Source of the DNA: Selaginella moellendorffii
Taxonomy: Eukaryota; Plantae; Lycopodiophyta
NCBI RefSeq assembly: GCF_000143415.4
Contig: NW_003314309.1
Coordinates: forward strand, 737,459 to 801,458
DNA length: 64,000 bases
Direction of reading: 5' to 3'
Shown here: positions 1 through 37,043 of the stretch, piece by piece
How positions within the stretch are numbered: position 1 is the first letter of the stretch
How the letters are laid out: each line of letters starts with the position of its first letter
Made by a program: the position numbers and the translations under genes
Notes under the pieces: model-generated
What the model was told of the DNA's origin: nothing
Database searches by the model: none
Seen by the model: the letters and a program-made list of their open reading frames with translations, nothing else

Positions 1-1403
1 TGAGTGCTATCAAAGACAAGCTCGACTTCCACTACATCCAGGGCGAGGTGGAGTTTTTCAAGAGCCGCGTAAAGAAATACAAGAGCACCGTGCTCAAGGT
101 AAACTTCATCCCCACTCCTCCGGGATTTCCAAACCCCGCGGGGATCGCCCTCCTCGACCAGAGATCCTTCCCAGTTCTCTTCGACAACTCCAAAGTCGAC
201 AAGCGCGACGTCTTCGTTGGCTCCTACAAGCCATCCGATGCCTTCACCGGCGGCGTTAGAACGCTGGCGTACCTCGACACCGAGGAGGAGAAGCACGCCC
301 GTCTCAAGGAATTCGTGTTCCAGATCCTCAAGAGCACCGGCCCGAGGTTCCTGTCCGAGTTTGAGGCCGAGATGGCCAGCGCTCTCGCCGGGGTGGAGGC
401 CGAGATGGAGTCCGGGACGAAGAACTCCATCGCCGTGAGCTCCAAGCTCCTGGATCTGGCGTTTAACTTCATGGTCAAGGCGGTCACCGGCGGCGCTGAC
501 CCATCCAGTCAATTCGGGTCATACGGCCCCCTGCTAATGCAGCTATGGATTGGCGTCCAATTCGCGCCAATCTCGCCACGCACGCAACTCCCCGCCGTGA
601 TCGAGGAGCTCCTCCTCCGCAGCTTTCCACTGCCGCCACTGATCGTCCGGTGGCCCTACGATCGCATCGCCGGATTCTTCCGCGACAACGCCACCGCGCT
701 GATCGACATGGGCGAGAAGCAATTCGGGCTGGATCGCGAGGAGGCGCTCCACAATCTCGTGTTCGTGGTGGGCGTGAATGGGTTCCTGGGCTTCTCGCGG
801 ATGCTCCCATCGCTGCTGTTCTACGTCGCGTCGCAGAGCGAGGCGTTCCAGCAGCGGCTGGGCGGGGAGATCCGCGGCGCGATGGGCGACGATGGTAGCG
901 CGCGCAAGTTCATGGCCGCGGTGGAGCGAATGCCGCTGCTCAAATCGACCGTGCTGGAGGTGATGAGGATCGCGCCGCCGGTGCTCTACCAGTACGGGCG
1001 CGCGCGGCGGGAATTCGTGGTGGAGTCCGGGGATGGGAGGGAGTTTCTCATCCGCAAGGGCGAGCTGCTGGGCGGATCGCAGGCGCTCGTGTGCCGGGAT
1101 CCCACAGTCTTCGATTCGCCGGACGAGTTTGTCCCGGATCGCTTCCTCGGGGCCCAAGGCCGCGAGCTGGAGCGCTGTGTGTTTTGGTCCAATGGCCGCA
1201 ACACGGACTCTACGAGCTCTGCCAACAAGCAGTGTGGAGGGAAGGATTTCGTGGAGACAATCGGGCGTTTGTTCGTCGCGCAGCTCTACTTGCGGTACGA
1301 AAGCATCAAGCTGGGCCCGGATTCCAAGCCCGAGTCGCCCGTGATCAAATCGCTGAGAAAGATCTCCGTGGCAACTAGAACTGGCAACAAAGTAAGTGCC
1401 TAG
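1..1403 (+). CDS. CYP74: CYP74-family cytochrome P450 (AOS/HPL/DES/EAS oxylipin enzyme); N-terminus lies before the window start
   Basis: Frame is open from base 3 (SAIKDKLDFHYIQGEVEFFKSRVKKYKSTV). CYP74 hallmarks: I-helix HNLVFVVGVNGFLG, ExxR (EVMR), PDRF, WSNG and heme motif NKQCGGKD. Intronless; stop at 1403. Confidence 0.95.
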   Translation, partial: SAIKDKLDFHYIQGEVEFFKSRVKKYKSTVLKVNFIPTPPGFPNPAGIALLDQRSFPVLFDNSKVDKRDVFVGSYKPSDAFTGGVRTLAYLDTEEEKHARLKEFVFQILKSTGPRFLSEFEAEMASALAGVEAEMESGTKNSIAVSSKLLDLAFNFMVKAVTGGADPSSQFGSYGPLLMQLWIGVQFAPISPRTQLPAVIEELLLRSFPLPPLIVRWPYDRIAGFFRDNATALIDMGEKQFGLDREEALHNLVFVVGVNGFLGFSRMLPSLLFYVASQSEAFQQRLGGEIRGAMGDDGSARKFMAAVERMPLLKSTVLEVMRIAPPVLYQYGRARREFVVESGDGREFLIRKGELLGGSQALVCRDPTVFDSPDEFVPDRFLGAQGRELERCVFWSNGRNTDSTSSANKQCGGKDFVETIGRLFVAQLYLRYESIKLGPDSKPESPVIKSLRKISVATRTGNKVSA

Positions 1404-1465
1404 CTCCAAGCTGGAGTGTATAAGCTCTTTGATTGATTGATAGCTCATAACTTACTCCTGGTTCT

Positions 1466-2909
1466 TCACTGTGGGATCTTTCGGAATTCCGCTAGCACGG
1501 GGTAGATGTTCTCGAAAGCTTCGTAGATCTCGTCTCTTACCTGTGGAGCTTTTTTCAGTATCAAAGCATGAGAGAGGGATCAAACCTTTGCTCCCGTGAG
1601 CACGATTTTGCCAGAGACGAAGATGAGCAAGACGATCTTAGGCTGCTTCATTCTGTAAATGAGTCCTGGGAAGATCTCCGGCTCGTACTGCGAAACGAAT
1701 GTCTTAACCAAGAGAAGAAGAAGAACAGGAGAAATGAGCATAGCTTAACTGTTGAGAAGTGGCCGTGGGAGAAGGCGAGGCCTTCGAGCCGGATTGGAAA
1801 TCGGACATCGCACGATCCCACGATGTTCTGAATCTTAAAGTCCTGTGCAGGAGAAAGGCTATGGAAGATACACATGATTTTGACAGGCTCTAGTACCTTG
1901 AATTGACTGGGAAAGCCAAGCTTTTGGATGATCCGAGCGTACTAGACACCATGCACACAAAACTTGCGTAAGTAGCTAGAAGTCATTGACTGCCTCTTTC
2001 AAGTAGTCTTTTTTCTCTTAGTTGGTTGAGAAACCTTTCTAGCCGCAAGCCTGCAATTTTGTTCGCTCTTGGCCCCAGTGCACACCTAAGTAGAGACCAA
2101 ACAAGAAAAAAAAAATAAAAAAAAATCTTACTGAATTAGCAGTTAGTCGTCGAGGTCACGGATAAAAATCTCACCATCTTTCCGGACGCAAAGATGAGAG
2201 CCGTGGTTTTGGGTTCTCTTATACGCATGATCACAGCAGCAAAACGCTGGATAAGAGAAGAGAGAGAGAGACAAGTCATAAAAACAAGAGAAAAAAAAGA
2301 ACACAAACAAACCTTGGGATTGTACTCGGCATTCCTTGCATGCAGCGCGATCGTCTTTAGCTCGAGCTTGCAATCCATGTTCACAGTCGCGACTATGTTC
2401 CTGGATGGCGGAATCAAAAAAGAAAATAGGATAAAATAAATCCACCAGGAAAGTCTAAAGTTCCATTTTTCCAACAAGAAGATATCACTCAACTGGAGCG
2501 TGGGAACGATCCCTGACGGATGCTTGCTCAAGTCAACAGCCACGCCGCCTTGGAATCCCAGTCGCGAGAAGCCCTCTTTGCTCGAAGGCGATGGATTGTT
2601 CTCCAGTTCTTGATGAATTTGCTGCTGCGGCTGGTGCTGATAAGCCACATTCTGGCGCTGCCACGCGAAGTACTGCTGCAGCTGACTGGAATCCAGATTC
2701 GCGATCGCTGGAGCCGCGGCATACTGACCCTGGAAGAAATTTTGCTGCGCGAAGAAATCTTGCTGAGCAGCAAGATCTTGCTGCTGCTGCTGGTATTGGA
2801 GGCGCCGATCGATCAAGGGCGGCGGCAGCGCCGGATCGCCGTGAAGAATGTGCTCCTCGGGGACGAAATCTTGGCTTTTCCCGGCGCCCGCCTCTTCACA
2901 TCCCTCCAT
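1466..2909 (-). CDS. TBP: TATA-box binding protein, multi-exon, with a long Gln-rich N-terminal extension
   Basis: Spliced exons give [70 protein letters not shown]...[96 protein letters not shown], with GT-AG introns. Confidence 0.95.
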
Positions 2910-3143
2910 TCCAAAACAATGGACCGCTCTTCGCGAGCCCTATTAATACGTATACGTTTGGCATGAAGGAGTGACACGTGGAAGATTCTCAAGCCAAGAG
3001 CTTTCCTTTTTTCTCCATTGACATTGATGAAAGAGCACAAAAAATCCCTCCTTGTTATCAAACTAATCTTTTGGCTCTATTGTTTTATACATTTACACGA
3101 GATGTTACTGCAAAAGGCCGCCCGAGAGGAAAGAGAAGAAGAG

Positions 3144-3148
<5 letters not shown>

Positions 3149-3180
<32 letters not shown>
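3149..3180. repeat. (AG)16 microsatellite
   Basis: Read directly; lies between the BiP stop and the TBP upstream region. Confidence 0.95.
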
Positions 3181-3186
<6 letters not shown>

Positions 3187-3210
3187 GAGAGAAAAAAAAA
3201 CTGGAAGAAC

Positions 3211-5634
<2,424 letters not shown>

Positions 5635-5979
5635 CGCGCTCTCTGTCGAAATGCTGCGAGACCTAAGCGCGCATGCCTTTTTAACTCCTCTGGTGCTAGC
5701 TGAAAGCTCTAGAAAGAACTAGGGCAGATGCAAGCAAGCGAATGGGAGCACGACACGTGGAAAACGCCCCAATGAGAATAAACCAGGTCATCCAGCCAAT
5801 CAGAAGGCGTGGCCACTCTACAATGAAGTGGCTCGGCCAATCAGAGCCCGGCATTTTGTTGGTTGTTTTATTGCCGCCGGATCGCGTGGGCGTGGACAAA
5901 TCGAGGCCGTTTGTTTTAAATGCCAGGTGAAAAGAAACTTAAAAGAGTGCCCTAGCTTGGACGCTGGACGGAGCTCGCC
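5635..5979. promoter_or_regulatory. Bidirectional BiP/GRP94 promoter with CCAAT boxes, an ERSE-like element and a G-box
   Basis: 345 bp between divergent ATGs. GACACGTGG at 5752-5760; CCAAT at 5769, 5796 and 5837 (the last two as identical GCCAATCAGA); CCAAT-N9-CCAGG at 5769-5787. Confidence 0.75.
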
Positions 5980-8900
5980 ATGGCGCGATCGGCAGCGGTG
6001 GTTGCCCTGTTCTTCCTGATCGCTCTCACGGCCTTCCCCGATCAAGGTAATCGATATTCACGGATCTCCGTGGGGGCATTGGATTGATCTAAGAATCGAG
6101 TGATTTTTGCTCTGCTTAGGCCCGATCAGGTCTAAGGTCCACGCAGAAGATACCGGAGTTACCGAAGAGAATGCCAGTCCTCCGAAAATCGAAGAACCGA
6201 TCGGTGGCGCGATTCCTGACGCCTTGTCTACTGATTCCCAGGTTGTCGAGAGGTAATGTACATCATTACTTTGCTGGAACTTTTTTGTTTCTCTTCTTTT
6301 TCCGGGGCAATTCTAAGTGTGTGGACATTTTCTACTCAGGGAGTCCGAGTCCGTGGGCCAAAAGACTTTGCGAGCCCATGCACAGAGATTTACGTTCCAG
6401 GCTGAAGTTTCGAGGTTGATGGACATTATTGTCAACTCTCTATATAGCAACAAGGATATCTTCCTTCGAGAGCTTATTTCGAACGCCTCTGACGTGAGTG
6501 AGATGGTTGATTTGGTGTTCGCCGTTTGAGCCCCTCTTCTTCTTGTTCTTTTTTCTCACAGGCATTGGACAAAATTCGGTTTCTGTCTCTTACCGACAAG
6601 TCTCAGCTCGGCGAAGGTGACGAGTCCAAACTGGAAATCAGGGTCGGTACTTCATCCATTTCAGTCGCTAATAGTCGTCCAAGTTCTTACATTCTATATA
6701 CCAGATTAAACTGGACAAAGAGAAGAAGCTTCTTTCTATTCGCGATCGTGGCATCGGGATGACTAAGGACGAGTTGATAAAGAACCTTGGAACAATCGCG
6801 AAGTCTGGAACCTCAGGTGCTTTCTTTGACTCCTTTGAATTTTGTTGAACAACTTTGATGTTTCTTTTGTAGCATTTTTCGAAAAGATGCAGTCAGGAGG
6901 TGACTTAAATTTGATTGGCCAGTTTGGAGTCGGTTTCTACTCGGTGTATTTGGTCGCGGATTACGTCGAGGTCATCAGTAAAAATAACGAAGACAAGCAG
7001 TATGGCTTTCAGCTTTTCTGTTTAACTAGGCTTTGGAAGCTGACATATATTTCTTAGGTACATTTGGGAATCTACAGCTGATGGAGCTTTTGCCGTTAGC
7101 GAGGATGAAGAAAATGAGCCGTTAGGACGCGGGACTGAAATTAAATTGCACCTGAAAGATGATGCTGCGGATTATTTGGAAGAGTCGAAACTGAAAGTAC
7201 GTTCCATTGTTTTGCCTTTTGATTTTGTGACCTAACTTTTTGTTTTTCTTTTGGCAACGCAGGAGCTAGTTCAAAAGTACTCAGAATTCATGAACTTTCC
7301 GATATACCTTTGGAATTCTACGGAAGTTGAGGTTGAAGTTCCTGTAGACGAAGAGACTGAAGAGACTGTTGAAGAGGAAGACGACAAACCAGAAGACAAA
7401 CCAGGTTTGCTTTCAAAGACAAGGAATGCTGTTTTAATTTTTGCTCTTTTAACTTGCAGAAGAAAGTGAAACAGAAGAGGAGACTGAAAGTAAGAGGTTT
7501 TCTTTCTATAAACTTTGGTTTACAGTATTTATCTTGTTTAGAGCCGAAAACGAAGAAAGTCAAAGAAATCAAGTGGGACTGGGAGCTACTAAATGACGTC
7601 AAAGCTATCTGGCTAAGGAGTCCAAAGGATGTTACCGAGGATGAGTACTCGAAGTTTTATCATTCGATCTCTAAGGTGAGCTGATGTGATTGGCAAATGT
7701 TGTCAATTTTACGTGCATTGTTCAGGATTATAACCCCGACAAGCCAATGTCCTGGAGTCATTTCTCTGCGGAAGGAGATGTCGAGTTCAAGGCTGTGTTG
7801 TTCATTCCTCCGAAGGCTCCGCATGATCTTTACGAGAATTACTACAACAGCAAAACATCATTGAAGCTCTACGTTCGGCGAGTGTTCGTATCCGACGAGT
7901 TCGACGAACTTTTGCCTAAGTACCTCAGCTTTTTGAAGGTTGGTCGTGTGCAGTATTCGCGTCAGTCTATTTAATGCTTGGGTTTTTCACAGGGCCTGGT
8001 CGATTCTGATACACTGCCAATTAACGTTTCTCGAGAAATGCTGCAGCAGCACGGCAGTTTGAGAACCATCAAGAAGAAACTTGTTCGCAAGGCGCTCGAT
8101 ATGATTCGTAGCATAGTTAACGCTGACCCGGACGAGGCCAATCCTGATGCCAAAGCGGAGGATGCCAAAGCTGAGAATGCTGAAGGTTGGTACATGTACA
8201 TATTGGTCGTTAACGTTAAGTTGTTTACCTTTCAGACGTAAAATCTGACGAGAAGAAGGAAGAAAAATCCGACGAGAAGAAGGAAGAAAACAAAGGAAAA
8301 TACGTCAAGTTCTGGAACGAGTTCGGCAAGTCGATTAAACTTGGCATCGTTGAAGACGCAACTAACAGAGTGCGTCTTGCGAAACTCCTGCGATTCTACA
8401 GGTAAGATAGTCAAGAAAATTGTAGCAGCTCTGATTGTTATTCTAAATTCTCACAGCTCTAATTCGGACGACAAGCTCTCCTCACTTGAACAGTATGTTA
8501 GCCGGATGAAGCCCGGGCAGAAGGACATCTATTTCATCACTGGCCAAGACCGTGAGCAACTCAAGAAGTCTCCGTTTCTGGAGAGGCTCCAGAAAGAAGG
8601 CTATGAGGTACTTTTTTCCTTTGGGATAATAATCCGAGGTGACTAATGCCTTGGTTCATGCGCAGGTTATTTTCTTCACGGACCCAGTCGATGAGTATTT
8701 GACTCAGTACCTGACCGAGTTCGATGACAAGAAGCTCGTCAACATCTCCAAGGAAGGATTGAAGCTTGGACAGAAGGACAAGGAGAAGGCCAAGGAATTG
8801 AAGCAGTCGTTCAAGCCTCTGCTGGCATGGTGGAAAGACGTTCTTAAGCCCGAGGGTGTGGACAGCGTGAAAATCAGTAACCGTCTTGCCGACACTCCCG

Positions 8901-9542
8901 CCGTGGTTGTGACATCCACTTATGGCTGGAGCGCCAACATGGAGAGGATAATGCGAGCGCAAACCTTGACCGACAACTCCAGACAGAACTACATGCGCGG
9001 AAAGAGAGTGCTGGAGATCAATCCCCGTCACCCCATCATCAAGGAGTTGCGTGGGAAAGTGGACGAACAGCCAGAGGTTCGTCTAGTTTGCATTACAAGA
9101 TCTAAGTTCTCATCTCATTGTTTTCTACAGGATGAGAGCACAAAGGCGACTGGAAAGCTCATCTACAAGACGGCTTTGATTGACAGTGGTTTCCTGGTTG
9201 ACGACTCGAAGGAGTTTGCGTCCCAGATCTACTCGATCATCAAGAGCAACCTCAACATCAGCCCCGACGCACAATTCGACGAGGAGATCGAGACGGTCAT
9301 CGAAGACAAGGTATGAAGCTTATGACAAGGCTAGGGATATGGATCTGTTTACTGTTTTTGTCTTCTCACAGGAGAGCGTCGAGGAGAACGAAGATGCTGA
9401 GCCAGGCTCCGAGGGTTCCGAGGGCTCCGAGCCAGATTCGCCCTTTGGCGAGGATGGATTGCCGAGAGGCCAGTCCATGGGGAGTACTCTTAGGTCCGAA
9501 AACTATGAGCCAGACGACGAAGACGAGAAGGATGAACTATGA
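5980..9542 (+). CDS. HSP90-7: ER HSP90 (GRP94/endoplasmin, SHEPHERD-like), multi-exon
   Basis: Signal peptide [16 protein letters not shown]. Motifs [52 protein letters not shown] and [10 protein letters not shown]-terminal KDEL, stop at 9542. Confidence 0.97.
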
Positions 9543-9671
9543 CGAGATAGCCTCTAGACATTTTGTACACTTGGCGCGCTCCCAAGAACCCTAATTTCTG
9601 TATGTTTGAAAAAACGAATATTTTGTGTTAACTAACCTGTGCTTAAAAGGTTTCAATCATAACCCAAGGCT

Positions 9672-12203
9672 ATGGATGGCCTGGAACAAGCGTTTGAATG
9701 GATCCAGGCCAAGGGCGCGCGGGCCACGCGCGCCGACTATGCCTCGCTGCTCAAGCGCTGTGGCGTCGCTAGGGTTCTAGATTTCGCCAGGCGCGCCTAC
9801 GAATCCATGGCGCGCAGCCGGCACCACGACGAGCTCTCCCTCCGCAATCTCTCCATCGAGATGTTTGGCAAGTGCGGGGACATCGAGGTGGCCAGGGAGA
9901 TTTTCCACGGCCTGTGGCGCCCAAATCTCTTCTCCTGGACGATGATCCTGGCGGCCTGCGCTCGCAATGGCCGGAATCTCGAGGCGCTGCTGCTCGTCCG
10001 CCGGATGATTGGCGAGGGAGCGCGACCGGATGTGGTGTGCTTCGTGACGATCCTGGATTTGTGCGCGGCCACGGCGGATTTGGAGCAAGGTAAGGTCGCT
10101 CACGCCTGGATTCTTGCCTGTGGTGTGGAGTCGTCTAGTAGGGTTCTTGGCAATGCGCTGATCAACATGTATGGTAAATGCAGGAATCTGGATCTCGCTA
10201 GAGCGCAGTTTGATCGGATGGAGCACCAAGATCACGGGAGAGATGTTGTGACTTGGAACTCGCTGCTTGCGGCATTTACCCACAATGGGTATTTGGAGGA
10301 GGCTGCTCGGTTGTTCCAAGAGATGGAAGTCGAAGGGATCAAGCCCAGCAGCGTGACTCTCACATGTGTTCTTGAGTCTTGTAGCGGCGATCGCCAAGGT
10401 AAGCTCTTTCACGATCGAGTTCTCGATCTCGGACTCCAAGGGGACGAGTTTCTCATGAATTCTCTCGTGAAGATGTATGCCAGGTGTGGGAGACTGGAAG
10501 AGAGCAGGCTGGTTTTCCGAGCGATCGATCAAAAGGATATCATTTCCTGGAACGTGATGATCTCGCTGGAAGCTCGGCTGGGAAGCAGCGAAGAGGCGGT
10601 TGAGCTGCTGCGAGAGATTGATCTGGAGGGATTTCCAGAGCCGGACGAGGTAACTTTTATCAGCGTTGTCGACGCTTGCTCTTGCCTGGGAGACTTAGAT
10701 CTGTGCTTCACCATCCAGGAGCTCGTTTCCAGCGCTGGCTTTGACGACGATCTCCTCCTTGGCAACGCTGTTGTCAACATGTTTGGGAAGTCCGGCTGCT
10801 TGGATGCTGCTCGAGCAACTTTTGATCGATTGCCAGTCAAGAATGTGGTCTCCTGGAACTGCTTGATCTCGGGTTACGCGCAGAACCTCCAGGGAAGAAG
10901 ATGTCTGGAGCTTTTCAGGCAGATGGATCAAGAGGGTGTCAAAGCCAACTCGGTCACCTTTGTCAGCCTTCTCGACGCGTGCTCTACAATCCCAGCTCTT
11001 GACTTTGGACGAGAACTCCATCTCCGGATCACTGCTGCCGGATTGGAACTACACACGGTGGTGGCGACTGCGCTGATCAACATGTATGGCAAGTGCCAGG
11101 AGCTCCAACTCGCACAAGAACTACTCGAGAGATACCAGTCGACGGGACTAGTGGCTTGCAACGTCATGATCTCGGCGTATGCCCAAGTTGGGCATAGCGA
11201 GAGAGCTATGGAGTTTCTCCAAGGAATGGATCTCGCAGGTGTCAAGGCCGACGTTGTGACTTACATTGGAGCGCTCGAGGCGTGCGCTTGCTCCAAGGAT
11301 TTTTCCAAAGGTCAGGCTGTCTACGATCGGGTTGTGAGCACCGGCTGGATCTCGCAGCTCGTCATTGCAAACTCGGTGATCAACATGCTGGGAAAGAGTG
11401 GACGGGTTTTGGAAGCCGCCATTGTCTTCGATCGGATGGAAAAGAGAGACAGCGTCACGTGGAACGCGATCGCTGCTGCATATGCCCAGAACGGGCATCC
11501 GCTGGAAGCGCTGGAATTGTTCTGGAGAATGCAGCAGCAGGGTGTTCGAGCACAGGAGGCGACGTTTGTGACGATCTTAGATGCTTGCGGCGATTCCAGC
11601 TCGTTGCTCGCCCATGGTCGATCGATCGCGAAGCTGAGTTCTTGGACGTCCGACGCGATCAAAGGGGCGCTGCTGGGAATGTACTCCAAGTGTGGCTGCG
11701 TGGACGACGCGCTGGCAGCGCTCCAGAGCTTGTCCTCGCGGGGGCTGCTGGCGTGGACGTCCATGCTGGCGGCCTACGCCCACGTCGGACGCGCCAGCGA
11801 GGCACTGCGCGTGCTCGGGCAAATGCAGCACGATGGGGTGGTGCCCGACGACGTGGCATTTTCTGCCGTGGTGTTTGCATGCAGCCACGCTGGACTCCTC
11901 CACGAGGCGCTCGTACGGCTGGCGTGGGTGTCCGGGGATTACGGTACGGCCATGGGCGCTGGGCTGTACGAATGCGTTGTGGATGTGCTTGCACGGATGG
12001 GCCGGCTCCAGGAGGCCGAGGAGCTCATGCACGCGATGCCGTACGAGCCCGATAGTTTGGCCTGGATGGCGCTTTTGGGCGCGTGTACAGTCCACGGTGA
12101 TCTGGAAAGGGGGGCTCGTACGGCGGGACACGAGGCATTGTTGGATTCGGGCAGTGGGCGATATGTCTTGCTATCCAATATGTACGCCTCATGGGAGGAT
12201 TGA
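9672..12203 (+). CDS. PLS-class pentatricopeptide repeat protein ending in an E domain, no DYW
   Basis: 843-aa intronless ORF with repeated NALINMYGKC / VVSWN motifs, ACSHAGL, WMALLGAC; ends YVLLSNMYASWED. Confidence 0.93.
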   Translation: MDGLEQAFEWIQAKGARATRADYASLLKRCGVARVLDFARRAYESMARSRHHDELSLRNLSIEMFGKCGDIEVAREIFHGLWRPNLFSWTMILAACARNGRNLEALLLVRRMIGEGARPDVVCFVTILDLCAATADLEQGKVAHAWILACGVESSSRVLGNALINMYGKCRNLDLARAQFDRMEHQDHGRDVVTWNSLLAAFTHNGYLEEAARLFQEMEVEGIKPSSVTLTCVLESCSGDRQGKLFHDRVLDLGLQGDEFLMNSLVKMYARCGRLEESRLVFRAIDQKDIISWNVMISLEARLGSSEEAVELLREIDLEGFPEPDEVTFISVVDACSCLGDLDLCFTIQELVSSAGFDDDLLLGNAVVNMFGKSGCLDAARATFDRLPVKNVVSWNCLISGYAQNLQGRRCLELFRQMDQEGVKANSVTFVSLLDACSTIPALDFGRELHLRITAAGLELHTVVATALINMYGKCQELQLAQELLERYQSTGLVACNVMISAYAQVGHSERAMEFLQGMDLAGVKADVVTYIGALEACACSKDFSKGQAVYDRVVSTGWISQLVIANSVINMLGKSGRVLEAAIVFDRMEKRDSVTWNAIAAAYAQNGHPLEALELFWRMQQQGVRAQEATFVTILDACGDSSSLLAHGRSIAKLSSWTSDAIKGALLGMYSKCGCVDDALAALQSLSSRGLLAWTSMLAAYAHVGRASEALRVLGQMQHDGVVPDDVAFSAVVFACSHAGLLHEALVRLAWVSGDYGTAMGAGLYECVVDVLARMGRLQEAEELMHAMPYEPDSLAWMALLGACTVHGDLERGARTAGHEALLDSGSGRYVLLSNMYASWED

Positions 12204-12564
12204 ACGGCCGGGATCTCCGGGAATGGACGGTGATCTCTGACGCTGTTGGAGTAGGAATATCTTGGGGAGATTTTTTCCGATGTGGATAAACTCTGTAGCA
12301 CAGCTGTGAACAATATTCGCGATAATTGTTTGCCCCTTGCTTACGTGTCGTAACCTTACATGCTGTCACGAGTTTGACCTTTTTAACCACGTGGTAAAAA
12401 AGTGTTGTGGCTTTGGTTTGGTGGCACTAGCTACTAGCGAGCAAGGCTAGCATGGGACGAGCAGCTAGGGTTCTTCGAGGAGGGAGTGCAATGCCGGGTT
12501 TGTCGATCGACGTAGCCAGCTGGGAGCTGTGATCGTGAGCGGCGCATTCGCCATTCGTCTTTCC

Positions 12565-13892
12565 ATGGGACTGGAGTTGTGGCGCCTTCGTCTATCGGTG
12601 GATTCGGCATCCAGATTGTGGCTGGCGCCACCGGGGAATCAAAATTTCGAGCTCAGGCACGGGGATTACGATCCTTGGAGGCGATGTCGAAGAAATTCCA
12701 GGCGATTTATTTGCTGCCGAGCGAGGAAGAGTCAATTCGAGGGTGGCAGCAAGGATTTGCGAGGCGGCGGCATCGAAATCCCGAGTTCTCTCCAGATTCT
12801 CAAGAGGAGAAACCGACAAAAGAGCCAGATACCTGGTCCCGGGGAGCTCGATGGCGGTAATCTGGTGTCGAGCTCGATCAAGAAGGCGTTTTCATCCATG
12901 GTCTTCATGCTCAAATCGATGCACCGGTTCACTCTGGAGATGCTGTGCTGCGATGAGAATTCCGTGCTCAACGAAGTGTGGAGCTTGGTCCAGCGAGAGA
13001 TGCACTCCTCGTTCCTGTGGCTGTTCCAGCAGGTATTTTCCTCCACACCAAAGCTCATGGTCTCGATCATGATCCTCCTCGCGAACTTCACAGTCTACTC
13101 CATGGACAGCTCCATCGCAATTCACTCACCAATTGTGCCAAGCACAGCGCTGGATCGCCCAGCTGCTCCAGCAGCAACAGTGATGTGGAGCTCTCCAGCT
13201 ACAGAAGTTCCGGGGTATCTAAACTTTTTTGACGAGGCTGCAATCGAGAGTAGCGGAGGATCAAAAGATGGCGGAGGAAAGCTTAGAACTCTTATAGCCG
13301 GGGGAACTGATGGGGGGGATGAGTTTCCTCTCTCCCGGCGGGGGAGAACCACGATGATGAGAGACGATCAACTGGCAGCACCAGGGAATCTTAGCAGGAA
13401 CCAGCAGCTAGCAGTGATGAAATTCCTCCAGCAAGTTCCAGTTCCAGCGAAAGTTACCAAGGAATCGCTGGTTGCTCCAGTGAGCGCAAAGCTGGAGCCC
13501 GACAACTACGAGTGCTTCGACCGGACGGACCTTCTCTACCAGCAGGCATTGGGCGAGGACCGAAAGAATCCACTGATTCTAGCCAACTACGCGCAGTTCT
13601 TGTACGTTGTTCGCCACGATCACGACAGGTACGTGGGAGTTCTTACTTCGATCGAGATGGTGAATGAAAGTTTTTGGATTGAATTGGCAGAGCTGAGACG
13701 CTGTTTCGATTGGCGATGGAGGCCGATCCCTCCGACGGTGAATCGCTCAGCCGATTCGCGAGCTTCTTGTGGCTCGCTCGAGGTGACAAGCAGGGCGCGG
13801 AGGATGCGTACAAAAATGCCATCGCGTCCGACCCCGCGAATCCATTCCACTTTGGAAGCTACGCACACTTCCTGTGGCACAGTGAGAGTTGA
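12565..13892 (+). CDS. Plant TPR-like superfamily protein (2 exons)
   Basis: Conserved plant block SSMVFMLK...EMHSSFLWLFQQVFSSTPKLMVSIMILLANFTVYS. C-terminal TPRs NPLILANYAQFL...RAETLFRLAMEADP...YAHFLW are joined across intron 13629-13690. Start ATG chosen by eye. Confidence 0.8.
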
Positions 13893-34105: not shown

Positions 34106-37043
34106 CCTTTGTCTTGCTGGTTGTTTGCTTGGCTTGCTCTCCTATGGTCTCAAAGACATTGGGCTACTAAAACTAATCATTCATGTCAGCTCCTACTAGA
34201 GAGAAAAGGAGGAGGAACACAAATATTTTGTGGAGATGGCCCATGAGATTTTGGAGATGTACAGCTGCCTACTTGTTGGTTTGGTGCTGGCTCTTCTGTT
34301 CCCAGTTGAAACAACCAGACCGGGTTAGTGGAGAGAGAGCATAAACAAAACAAGCTTTTGGTTTTAACTTGCTCTCATGTTGGCTTTGTCCTAAGTGGGC
34401 TGCTTTGCTTATATCTGTAACAAAGAATGTGTAAGTGAGTAGTAGTGATTACAGGAGGAAGGTGTGGAATCAAAACAGATTGAGAAGGGCTTTTGTCAGA
34501 GGAATCCCAGGAGAAGACTGGTTCTTCCCCCTAATAAATAATGTTAGAGAGAGAGAGGATAGAGGTCATCTTTCGAGATAGAGAGAGAAAAAAAGAGGAA
34601 TAGAGAAATGATGCCTTGCCAGATCCATCCAGTGCCTGCCCTGCCCCGTTTGGGGGCTATAACATGGAGTTTTTGATCATTTTCCAGGCCCAAACAAACA
34701 AAGCTCTGCTCACCAGCCAGGGAATGCAGAGACCCAACTCTTTTGTGTGTGAGAGAGACTCTGTGCATGAGAGGGAGAGTTTGTGTGTAAACACCAAGGG
34801 GGACTGATTGCTTCCCCAAAGCTTCCAGTTTCAAAGTGTTTGTTAAGATTTTGGTGGGAATATCTTTCTCCTCTCTTTTGCTTGTTTCTAGGAGGAGAGG
34901 AGAGCTCAGAAGAGGTTGCTTCAGAATCTTTGACCAGCTAGGAAGAATAAATTTCTGCACCCAGAGGCCATAAACTGATGACTCTCCTCTCCCAATGTCA
35001 TTTGCACTCCAAGGCCAGCCAAGAGGGATGAAAGAACAAGGATGAAGGAGGGAAAGATCTCAGCTCTTTGTGTCTGTCAGTACCTCCTACCTAGGTACAG
35101 CCAAAGGGCAAGATTGCAATTGCCAAATGCCAGCCCACAAGAGAGATGAGGTGATGCATATATTTCTCAAGAAATAAATTTGGTTTTTTTTTCTTTATGA
35201 GTGAATAGGGGCCACTTTTCTGGAGCCGGCCTGCCTCTGCTGCACTTCTGCCCTGCCTTTTCTCTGCTGCACACAAGTCCCAGGAAGAGGCATTTGTGGT
35301 GCTGGTTATTTGTTAGGTGGTGTCTTGGCTTGGACCATGATTTCAGTTATTCTATCAACTAATTTTGTTTAGTGTCAAATTGGCTAACATTTTCCTCTTC
35401 CACTTTACAGACAGGAGATTGCACAAATGATGAAACTAATTTTTACGAATCATTCTGTGGATCATGGGCAGACAAGGATACTTTTGTATTGTTTGCTGGT
35501 TTGCAGTTTTCTGTTCTGGATTTCACGGATAAACAAGAAATCTAGCAAAGTAAGCACATGAATATTGGCAGATACTTGAAGCTATGGACTTTCATAAAAG
35601 AAAAATATAAAATATAAATGTGTTGAAGTGGACAGTATATGTTTTGATTCTATAAAATTTATAAACCAAAGTGTATGGTCTAGTGGTTTATATCTCTTTC
35701 AGATATTATTGTAATTTACACTATAGTTTTTGTAGGCTCTAGGTTGTTAAATTTATCAATGATTATTTTATTAGATAATGATGCAACTTTTTTATTGGAG
35801 CTTTTCAAAAAGTATACACAGAAAGAAAGTCTTGGAGCTCAAATATTCTTTGACTTTTAGTTTAAGAATTACAAATAGAAAATAGAGGATGAGGGCTTGG
35901 GGACAATCGGTGTAGAGTGATGCAATTGTACAGACTAGCTAGCTCACAACGCAAGAAGATTATTTTCGTAGCCACTTTTGATACGCATTCTACCAGGTCA
36001 AACAGGCCAACCTTATCTACTTCGTGTTCCCGAGTTTTTCCGTTTTCTTTTATCTCCTTGAAGTGCTCACTAAAAAGATGGCTATAGGTGATGCTTCCTT
36101 GCTCCTTTGTTTGTTTGCTAGTTTGTTTCTATGGTACCTCTTAAAGCTAAAGGTCGGTGGTCTCATTTTTTATGCTCGTTGTGGGCCAGTGTGCCTCTGT
36201 TGCATATGTTATATATATGTTGTAGAGTGGATGTGATGTTATTGTGTTGTGGTATGTGCGTTTACACTCTTAAAAATGTAGTATTCCTATGGTGGAAAGA
36301 TCTTGTACCTCATTGTAACTTTCTTCTCTCCTTCTTTCTAGATGGTGTCTCTCCACCTTCTGGGCAAGAGATGTCATTGTCGTGTGAAATTGTTGGGAAC
36401 TTAAGGATTGAAATCCAAGGCCTCAAGCATTGAAGAAAAAGAAGGGGAGAAGCGTATAAAGGAGTAACACTCTCTTATACTTGCATGCGCAGTATGATTC
36501 TTTGTCTCGCTCTTTCCGAGCAGTCCTATGTAATGCAGGCATGTCAAGCTTGTACACAAGCGCTCTAGGAGATGCAACAAGATCGTTTTCTTTGATATTC
36601 ACGTCTTATTTCTTTCTCTTTCCTTACCTTTTTTCTTTTTTGTCATGGAGAAGCCAAAGAGCTCTCTTTGTTGGTTGGCTTGTTTGATTGAGAACTTTCA
36701 AGGCAGCGAAAGTCTTCACATGTTAAGATCCATTGAAGGAGTCCAGATGAGTTTGAAAGTTGGACGTTGAAGCCTCAGAAGCACATGGTTTTCTCCCTCT
36801 CTAGTGGAAAAATCTCTGCAGTGAGTTTGGTGGTAAATCCATCCAAAAGTCCGTGGATAAGGCTGATTGCCAAACACCAGTTGGAGTATTTCTTTTCAGT
36901 TCATCCAGATAATCTCATTTCATAGTTCATTCCAGACAATCTCAACATGAGGATTAAATTGGTGGTCAGGAGTTTTATTGTGAAACCCAAAATAAACAAA
37001 CCAAACCTTGCAACGCAACCTTATTCTAATGAACTAAATCACT

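Follow-up and report, generated by a model that had tools for sequence, protein, structure and literature searches.

In Arabidopsis, the promoters of BiP1/2/3, which encode the ER-lumenal HSP70, and of SHEPHERD, which encodes the ER HSP90 known as GRP94 or endoplasmin, carry ERSE-I elements used by NF-Y and bZIP28 together with P-UPRE elements used by bZIP60. The genes are unlinked there, and their elements take the canonical CCAAT-N9-CCACG and TGACGTGG forms. A different architecture is familiar from animal bidirectional promoters, where the genes lie <1 kb apart, CCAAT boxes are over-represented, and at least one side is without a clear TATA box. The mammalian HSPD1/HSPE1 genes, cooperating chaperones arranged head-to-head, share a short spacer that is stress-responsive and has been dissected experimentally. 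In Chlamydomonas, Cre02.g080600 encodes BiP2 (PMC3862487), while Cre02.g080650 and Cre02.g080700 encode the ER HSP90B and an ER Hsp70 (PMC6313938). The locus numbers of BIP2, HSP90B, and BIP1 are consecutive, placing members of the same two families as immediate neighbors, an adjacency taken from the numbering alone. Our literature search found no earlier description of BiP–GRP94 linkage.

The locus described here lies in a 64-kb stretch of Selaginella moellendorffii DNA, analyzed as a whole and hereafter called the window. As in the Arabidopsis promoters, CCAAT boxes and CCACG/ACGT cores cluster just upstream of BiP and GRP94, but in Selaginella the two kinds of motif sit on opposite strands, 7–8 bases apart. 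Facing genes, an excess of CCAAT, and a TATA box missing on one side are shared with the NF-Y-rich bidirectional promoters of animals; those pairs, however, are mostly functionally unrelated housekeeping genes, whereas BiP and GRP94 both act in one folding pathway. The likeness to the HSP60/HSP10 pair drawn in a preliminary description of this DNA is apt as an analogy, although HSPD1/HSPE1 is mitochondrial and belongs to another stress pathway, and the BiP–GRP94 spacer is known from sequence. We give a probability of roughly 0.6 to the reading that a single compact bidirectional promoter serves BiP and GRP94 of S. moellendorffii, which are a true divergent pair, and that their linkage is old. 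The pair has probably been under selection, with a shared promoter of NF-Y/bZIP type.

Layout of the BiP–GRP94 locus

Open reading frame translations place BiP on the reverse strand and GRP94 on the forward strand, with start codons facing each other in a divergent arrangement (Table 1). The preliminary description had the genes of the two main ER chaperones diverging from one shared interval, and translations, Pfam matches, and spliced RNA contigs agree in bearing this out; its length of 345 bp needed correction to 346 bp. GRP94, from its forward ATG onward, encodes a signal peptide and a GRP94-type N-domain motif and ends in DEKDEL, and its exon pieces match the Pfam families HSP90 and HATPase. 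It is 60–64% identical to angiosperm endoplasmins, plant endoplasmins being its best full-length matches. A word search with the Ensete endoplasmin returned matches that were overwhelmingly angiosperm, and the 18 matches to GRP94 exon 7 in a word search included no Selaginella relative.

BiP, whose reverse-strand ATG occupies 5634–5632, likewise begins with a signal peptide, and three of its exon pieces match Pfam HSP70. Its exon 2 is 92–96% identical to plant luminal-binding proteins, a conservation too high for the word search with this exon to rank matches by lineage. RNA contigs are joined across 3716–3763, 3845–3903, 4060–4118, 4598–4661, 4907–4969, 5183–5251, and 5512–5591. The C-terminus reads DDDHSEL, with HSEL where HDEL is the plant form, and the RNA contigs concur; variant C-terminal ends of BiP have been reported in moss too (PMC5028893).

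Both genes are spliced and expressed, as seen in assembled RNA contigs from three studies. In three runs the BiP contigs extend to 5671, 5707, and 5729, values computed from the lengths of the records, the bin depths, and a loose end at 5729, and they set a minimum for how far the BiP 5′ end reaches; the GRP94 contigs start, by computation, at about 5943–5953. With BiP mRNA reaching 5729, the gap between the transcripts is at most ~213 bp, these transcript ends being bounds from assembled contigs and not mapped 5′ ends. By the same bounds, the two transcript starts lie <1 kb apart, within the distance that defines a divergent promoter. The remaining core holds all three CCAAT boxes, all four CCACG half-sites, and the G-box. 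A DNA contig from a separate run covers 3754–6260 and bridges both gene starts, so the assembly at BiP–GRP94 is independently confirmed.

Closeness by itself proves nothing here, since short spacers are common in S. moellendorffii: the distance to the ATG of the next gene is ~300 bp from the BiP stop codon and 130 bp from that of GRP94, and among spacers of 130–350 bp one of 346 bp is ordinary. A PPR protein is encoded in the neighborhood of the pair.

Table 1. Features of the BiP–GRP94 locus, in window positions
Feature	Position	Strand	Remarks
BiP (ER-lumenal HSP70) coding region	3211–5634	−	ATG 5634, stop 3213–3211; 7 short introns; from translations, Pfam, RNA joints
BiP exon 1	5592–5729	−	43 coding bases (5634–5592) and at least 95 bases of 5′ UTR (5635–5729); splice donor read in sequence
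Spacer between BiP and GRP94 start codons	5635–5980		346 bp
Untranscribed core, largest possible	5730–5942		~213 bp; from RNA contig extents and motif map
G-box-type bZIP site (candidate), CACGTGG	5754–5760		CCACGTG on BiP strand
CCAAT box 1 with CCAGG 9 bases on (one-mismatch ERSE-I)	5769–5787	+	Motif map
CCAAT box 2 (GCCAATCAGA), then CGTGG after 7 bases	5795–5812	+	Minus strand reads CCACG-N7-ATTGG
CCAAT box 3, exact copy of GCCAATCAGA	5836–5845	+	Motif map
Tandem GCGTGG GCGTGG	5884–5895		Two CCACG half-sites on BiP strand
TATA-like TTTTAAAT	5914–5921	+	~25–30 bases upstream of first bases of GRP94 RNA contigs
GRP94 exon 1	5943–6047	+	5′ UTR of at least 38 bases, followed by ATG 5981 and signal peptide; from RNA contigs
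GRP94 (ER HSP90, endoplasmin) coding region	5981–9542	+	~16 short introns; ends KDEL; from translations, Pfam, RNA joints
CCAAT-N4-CCACG composite	6069–6082	−	BiP strand, within GRP94 intron 1

The pair in other green lineages

Synteny in algae had been put forward as a check on the pairing, and the pair is present there: in Volvox, in a second alga, and, by locus numbering, in Chlamydomonas. On the Volvox reticuliferus contig BNCQ01000046.1, an HSP70 gene on the minus strand, its product ending in HDEL, and a GRP94 gene on the plus strand, its product ending in KDEL, stand head-to-head with 340 bp between their start codons, nearly the 346 bp of Selaginella, while the neighboring gaps measure 1.4–2.1 kb. 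This Volvox protein (P0029) surfaced in a representative search with GRP94 exon 15, the other matches being mostly fragments. The second alga, a distant green alga (contigs L098–L100, 71% GC) whose GRP94 is only 63% identical to that of Volvox, has BiP on the minus and GRP94 on the plus strand with at most 330 bp between first coding exons, and its contigs also carry a AGCCAATCAG box. Across Selaginella, Volvox, and this alga, the start codons are 233–346 bp apart. The same orientation recurs on L009, a contig that similarity and a single-exon tree place outside the angiosperms; run numbers close to its own belong to a Zimbabwean gut-metagenome project, but its sequence is plant-like and nonhuman. 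There, 5.5 kb separates BiP from GRP94, BiP has three CCAAT boxes on one strand upstream of it, and the spacer includes a perfect CCAAT-N9-CCACGTCA. The arrangement is therefore no peculiarity of Selaginella, and its occurrence elsewhere makes a functional coupling likelier than the motifs alone would.

What the lineages share is the arrangement, and not the sequence between the genes. No motif common to the Selaginella, Volvox, and L098 spacers emerged from their comparison, the algal spacers being without a recognizable Selaginella motif, and in an alignment of the Selaginella and L009 spacers the match is confined to the CCAAT box region (E = 0.39). The open reading frames of the L009 spacer belong to no Pfam family; against Rfam, this spacer yielded only sub-threshold matches to generic hairpins, and positions 1–13000 of the window yielded none.

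Pairing is absent at the three GRP94 loci L001, L005, and L013, at one Sphagnum BiP locus, and at one further BiP locus; the contigs L011, L093, L094, and L096 are uninformative, their upstream sequence being too short. By similarity and the single-exon tree, L001 groups with grasses, and L005, L013, and L014 fall inside the angiosperms. A scan of metagenome HSP90 loci with GRP94 exon 3, from which L077 (assembly labeled human gut metagenome) was excluded, found a divergent HSP70 in 0/79, and in one of the 79 an HSP70 lay downstream on the same strand.

With the genes split at other GRP94 loci, at least two of them angiosperm, the pair looks like an old arrangement lost by flowering plants. 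We tentatively go further, though at somewhat less than even odds: the head-to-head pair may be an ancestral green-plant unit whose spacer of a few hundred bases was kept since before the chlorophyte/land-plant split by selection for proportionate co-expression, and which was broken up toward the flowering plants, whose BiP and GRP94 are each equipped with canonical ERSE/UPRE elements. Were this so, the benefit of pairing would be a proportionate supply of two chaperones between which clients are passed. The spacers have no sequence in common, many sampled lineages are without the pair, and it is known so far from four or five lineages only, all of which would fit a pairing with separate origins in chlorophytes, Selaginella, and the plant behind L009, brought about by convergence under selection for co-expression and not by inheritance. 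Such repeated origin seems doubtful to us when the orientation is identical in each case, 5′ ends facing, when the cases fall on either side of the chlorophyte–streptophyte split, and when it is very improbable that chance brought BiP and GRP94 together repeatedly; by our own estimate, chance adjacency of BiP and GRP94 is of the order of 1 in several thousand per genome. Gene order is seldom conserved between green algae and a vascular plant. Two cooperating chaperone genes that keep one orientation and a spacer of 230–350 bp in Volvox, a second alga, and a spikemoss would therefore give a clean example, provided by nature, of selection acting on eukaryote gene order.

Motifs and proposed regulation of the spacer

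CCAAT boxes begin at 5769, 5796, and 5837, all on the forward strand, and the latter two are identical copies of GCCAATCAGA, which we take to be a strong NF-Y consensus; this 10-mer occurs only twice in the window, both times in the spacer. The preliminary description had listed these three boxes, two of them identical, along with a CCAAT-N9-CCAGG one mismatch from ERSE, a bZIP core, and further CGTGG half-sites, and each of these could be located, the bZIP core as CACGTGG and the half-sites at 5808, 5885, and 5891. The one-mismatch ERSE-I is weak on its own, because 6 such sites are observed in the window against 2.7 expected. Another one-mismatch ERSE, near 36852, adjoins unrelated genes. 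The G-box and the inverted CCAAT at 5769 together read ATTGG-N8-CCACG on the minus strand. Three of the 6 composites of a CCAAT box and CCACG within 12 nt in the window are found at 5756, 5796, and 6069. Two variants in another DNA run, at 5879 and 5897, flank the tandem GCGTGG and leave both copies intact.

The density of these sites is well beyond chance. In 5000 dinucleotide shuffles of the spacer, CCAAT occurred 0.66 times on average and at least three times in 3.1% (observed 3), CCACG occurred 0.49 times on average and at least four times in 0.08% (observed 4), and both thresholds were reached jointly in 0/5000; CACGTG is expected 0.04 times per spacer. The spacer is also the sole place in the window with at least three CCAAT and at least four CCACG per 346 bp. 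The claim that NF-Y-type and bZIP-type sites gather in the spacer thus holds, and the cluster is non-random.

All four CCACG half-sites of the spacer lie on the BiP strand, opposite to all CCAAT boxes, and the TATA-like box would serve GRP94 alone, a division that might reflect two independent, abutting promoters, one for BiP built from the G-box and CCAAT, the other for GRP94 from the TATA-like sequence and the tandem GCGTGG, their genes being neighbors by inheritance and compaction with no functional sharing. Two full promoters would have just ~213 bp available to them. Although the L009 genes, so widely spaced and with the CCAAT triplet near BiP, indicate that the pair can exist without close sharing, and the genes of the window generally have short spacers between them, three distant lineages hold the genes within 233–346 bp, in Volvox across a gap far below its neighbors. 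Boxes of the CCAAT/NF-Y kind are, moreover, typical of bidirectional promoters in mammalian studies. We regard full independence as unlikely and favor a single shared promoter.

Such a shared promoter may work as follows. Its core of at most ~213 bp would present three NF-Y-type CCAAT boxes one way and the G-box with three more CCACG half-sites the other way. Transcription of GRP94 would start ~25–30 bases past the TATA-like TTTTAAAT, while the BiP side, which has no clear TATA box, would start without one. NF-Y would hold the block open and active toward both genes; upon ER stress, Selaginella factors of bZIP60/bZIP28 type would bind the CCACG(T) sites next to NF-Y, and their combined binding would raise BiP and GRP94 jointly and in proportion. 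Should transcription respond to stress in both directions, this core of 213 bp would make a very compact inducible part for driving two genes at once.

The term ER-stress promoter, as used for this spacer in the preliminary description, has the clustered NF-Y- and bZIP-type sites in its favor, but the canonical elements are absent. There is no exact ERSE-I (CCAAT-N9-CCACG) in the whole window, and none in the spacer because its CCAAT boxes and CCACG sites are on opposite strands. Within 3000–9700, we found no ERSE-II (ATTGG-N-CCACG), the nearest being the ATTGG-N8-CCACG and CCACG-N7-ATTGG of the minus strand, and no UPRE/XBP1-type TGACGTG[GT], TGACGTGG, or CCACGTCA. Canonical UPR elements are present upstream of GRP94 in L001, L005, and L013, at least two of which are clearly angiosperm, and in the spacer of L009; a UPRE-type site was found in these four and in L007. 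We know of no study showing function for CCAAT and CCACG on opposite strands at a spacing of 7–8 bases. Judged by its motif content, the spacer is plausible as an ER-stress promoter, and one without textbook elements would let plant ER-stress research test what arrangement of CCAAT and CCACG is really required by NF-Y and bZIP factors.

To our knowledge, BiP and GRP94 are UPR-induced in every tested eukaryote possessing them. Against this established induction, the chance improbability of four CCACG half-sites and a G-box in 140 bp, and the retained bZIP60 pathway of Selaginella, a constitutive, NF-Y-driven housekeeping bidirectional promoter, with ER-stress induction in Selaginella weak, encoded elsewhere, or post-transcriptional, is improbable, even though every canonical UPR element is missing from 3000–9700 and both mRNAs were assembled, at appreciable word depth, from the RNA of three unrelated data sets that are not known to come from stressed material. 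In transfection experiments, the mRNA of the S. moellendorffii bZIP60 orthologue was spliced in the cytoplasm in the manner characteristic of this pathway (PMC11077094).

Gene identities, arrangement and transcripts

BiP and GRP94 had been described as diverging head-to-head from a short spacer, and this arrangement holds: the genes lie on opposite strands with start codons 346 bp apart (5635–5980), and one DNA contig from a different S. moellendorffii sequencing run (3754–6260) bridges both gene starts. We identify the HSP70 gene as BiP and the HSP90 gene as GRP94 on the basis of Pfam matches of their exon pieces, the 92–96% identity of BiP exon 2 to plant luminal-binding proteins, the 60–64% identity of GRP94 exons to angiosperm endoplasmins (searches run one exon at a time), and a signal peptide and ER-type C-terminus in both translations. 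Introns of 50–90 bases and the presence of PPR genes are consistent with nuclear Selaginella DNA. In RNA-type contigs from three separate studies both genes are present spliced, every intron being removed at GT..AG. Judged by record lengths, bin depths and one loose end, BiP contigs extend to 5671, 5707 and 5729, and GRP94 contigs start at ~5943–5953; as contig ends bound transcripts rather than mark their true starts, the untranscribed part is at most ~213 bases (5730–5942).

Genes and motifs at the BiP–GRP94 spacer
Feature	Position	Strand	Remark
BiP (HSP70)	ATG 5634, stop 3213–3211	minus	seven short introns; C-terminus DDDHSEL
GRP94 (HSP90)	ATG 5981, DEKDEL end at 9539	plus	~16 short introns
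CCAAT boxes	5769, 5796, 5837	one strand	5796 and 5837 are identical GCCAATCAGA
CCAAT-N9-CCAGG	5769–5787
CACGTGG	5754–5760
CGTGG	5808, 5885, 5891
TATA-like TTTTAAAT	5914–5921		~25–30 bases ahead of GRP94 contig starts
CCAAT/CCACG composite	6069		inside GRP94 intron 1

The usual plant BiP C-terminus is HDEL. Here it is HSEL (3211–3225, minus strand), with RNA contigs concordant, and moss BiPs are likewise reported to have variant C-termini (PMC5028893). A (CT)n microsatellite occupies the BiP 3′ UTR (3150–3201). In another S. moellendorffii DNA run, 24 bases are absent at 8247 with the frame kept; they belong to the GRP94 acidic linker with its SDEKKEE(K/N) repeats, a length polymorphism of this charged linker. 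That run also lacks 12 bases at 7236, within an intron.

Pairing across green lineages

The synteny check called for by the preliminary description found the pair elsewhere. In Volvox reticuliferus (BNCQ01000046.1), an HSP70 gene (HDEL end, minus) and GRP94 (P0029, KDEL end, plus) have start codons 340 bp apart, at a locus where gaps between neighboring genes are 1.4–2.1 kb. Contigs from three metagenome samples (L098–L100) again carry BiP on the minus and GRP94 on the plus strand. Their source is an alga of 71% GC, and a nuclear PsbX gene lies close by; the spacing is 233–330 bp (GRP94 start at 8256, first BiP coding exon at 7925 at least, or 8022 by an exon-1 model), and the spacer contains a AGCCAATCAG box. 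At just 63% identity to Volvox GRP94, this protein represents a separate lineage. In a further contig, L009, placed outside angiosperms by a single-exon tree and sharing a 12-residue protein stretch with Selaginella, BiP (ATG 1455, minus) and GRP94 (ATG 6966, plus) diverge across 5.5 kb. In Chlamydomonas reinhardtii, Cre02.g080600 is BiP2 (PMC3862487), Cre02.g080650 is ER HSP90B and Cre02.g080700 is an ER Hsp70 (PMC6313938). These consecutive locus numbers on chromosome 2 already make the adjacency, not the orientation, publicly visible.

Pairing was absent from the GRP94 loci L001 (grouping with grasses; within 5 kb upstream), L005 (ACBP gene upstream) and L013, from L095 (formin gene upstream), from one Sphagnum troendelagicum BiP locus (within 10 kb upstream), and from all 79 metagenome HSP90 loci analyzed, a set excluding L077 (labelled human gut metagenome). 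In Arabidopsis and human, BiP and GRP94 lie on different chromosomes. Among green plants the pairing is probably ancient. We estimate chance adjacency of the two genes at the order of one in thousands per genome, and regard a convergent origin, with the pair assembled separately in these lineages, as less likely. Head-to-head pairs with a shared promoter are well known, HSP60/HSP10 being the chaperone case; BiP–GRP94 is of the same kind and new among them. We found no comment on its linkage in the literature searched for any organism, although many subscription papers, older Chlamydomonas chaperone reviews among them, lay outside the search and may hold an earlier remark.

Two loci showed irregularities. 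Metagenome contig L101 (1–9000) has GRP94 exons as in L098, but an Argonaute (PAZ/Piwi) gene upstream in place of BiP; its first GRP94 exons are missing, and the contig represents a rearranged copy or else an assembly chimera. The S. troendelagicum BiP gene (L007, 12012–17511) is split into pieces in public annotation; ~5.5 kb separates its exon 4 from exon 5, either as an insertion or as an exceptionally long intron.

Spacer motifs and the promoter they may form

All motifs first listed for the spacer are present; its BiP side has no clear TATA box. Dinucleotide shuffles averaged 0.66 CCAAT and 0.49 CCACG per spacer; at least three CCAAT turned up in 3.1%, at least four CCACG in 0.08%, and the two jointly in 0 of 5000. 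The window has no second 346-bp stretch with three CCAAT and four CCACG, GCCAATCAGA recurs nowhere else in it, and three of the six places in 64 kb where CCAAT falls within 12 bases of CCACG are here (5756, 5796, 6069). The site cluster is real and non-random.

The canonical elements are a different matter. All CCAAT boxes lie on one strand and all CCACG on the opposite one, making ERSE-I (CCAAT-N9-CCACG) impossible in the spacer. The whole window contains no exact ERSE-I and six one-mismatch copies versus 2.7 expected; ERSE-II and TGACGTG[GT]/CCACGTCA are absent within 3000–9700. This is not due to rarity in orthologues: the L001, L005 and L013 GRP94 promoters each carry an exact sense-orientation ERSE-I plus CCACGTCA, a Sphagnum BiP has TGACGTGG close to the gene start, and the L009 spacer has a perfect CCAAT-N9-CCACGTCA on the reverse strand (3966–3987), mid-spacer, 2.5 kb from BiP. 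L009 has another TGACGTGG that runs directly into a 36-nt inverted repeat with arms 92% complementary (4199–4275); neither a gene nor a known RNA turned up there.

The Selaginella promoter thus combines the same ingredients in a non-textbook layout, its BiP strand carrying ATTGG-N8-CCACGTG and CCACG-N7-ATTGG as candidate NF-Y/bZIP sites. The bZIP60 orthologue that the species retains undergoes the unconventional splicing of the pathway (PMC11077094). The preliminary interpretation is supported in part: the pair, its expression and the non-random cluster are established, the labels "ER-stress promoter" and "co-regulated module" are inferred, and the canonical elements are missing.

The spacer is best read as one bidirectional promoter for BiP and GRP94. 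The NF-Y array would hold a short nucleosome-free block active both ways, adjacent bZIP sites would contribute stress induction, and both proteins would rise together at a fixed ratio, a proportion suited to proteins acting sequentially on the same clients. Functional coupling is argued for most strongly not by the motifs but by the conserved orientation and 233–346 bp start-codon gap in three distant green lineages. Against one promoter, no motif is common to the Selaginella, Volvox and L098 spacers, the L009 pair exists across 5.5 kb, and intergenic spacers of 130–350 bp are normal in this window. Two independent promoters that simply abut are, set against the conserved spacing, a less likely alternative. 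A constitutive NF-Y promoter, for which the missing canonical elements might speak, is more doubtful still given the bZIP-type sites beside the CCAAT boxes.

With the GRP94 stop codon only 130 bp before its start, an intronless PPR gene (843 aa; 9672–12203, plus strand) must have a promoter that overlaps the 3′ end of GRP94. Plant TATA-binding proteins normally have no long glutamine-rich N-terminal extension; the TATA-binding-protein gene ~300 bp downstream of BiP (about 1500–2909, minus strand) encodes one.
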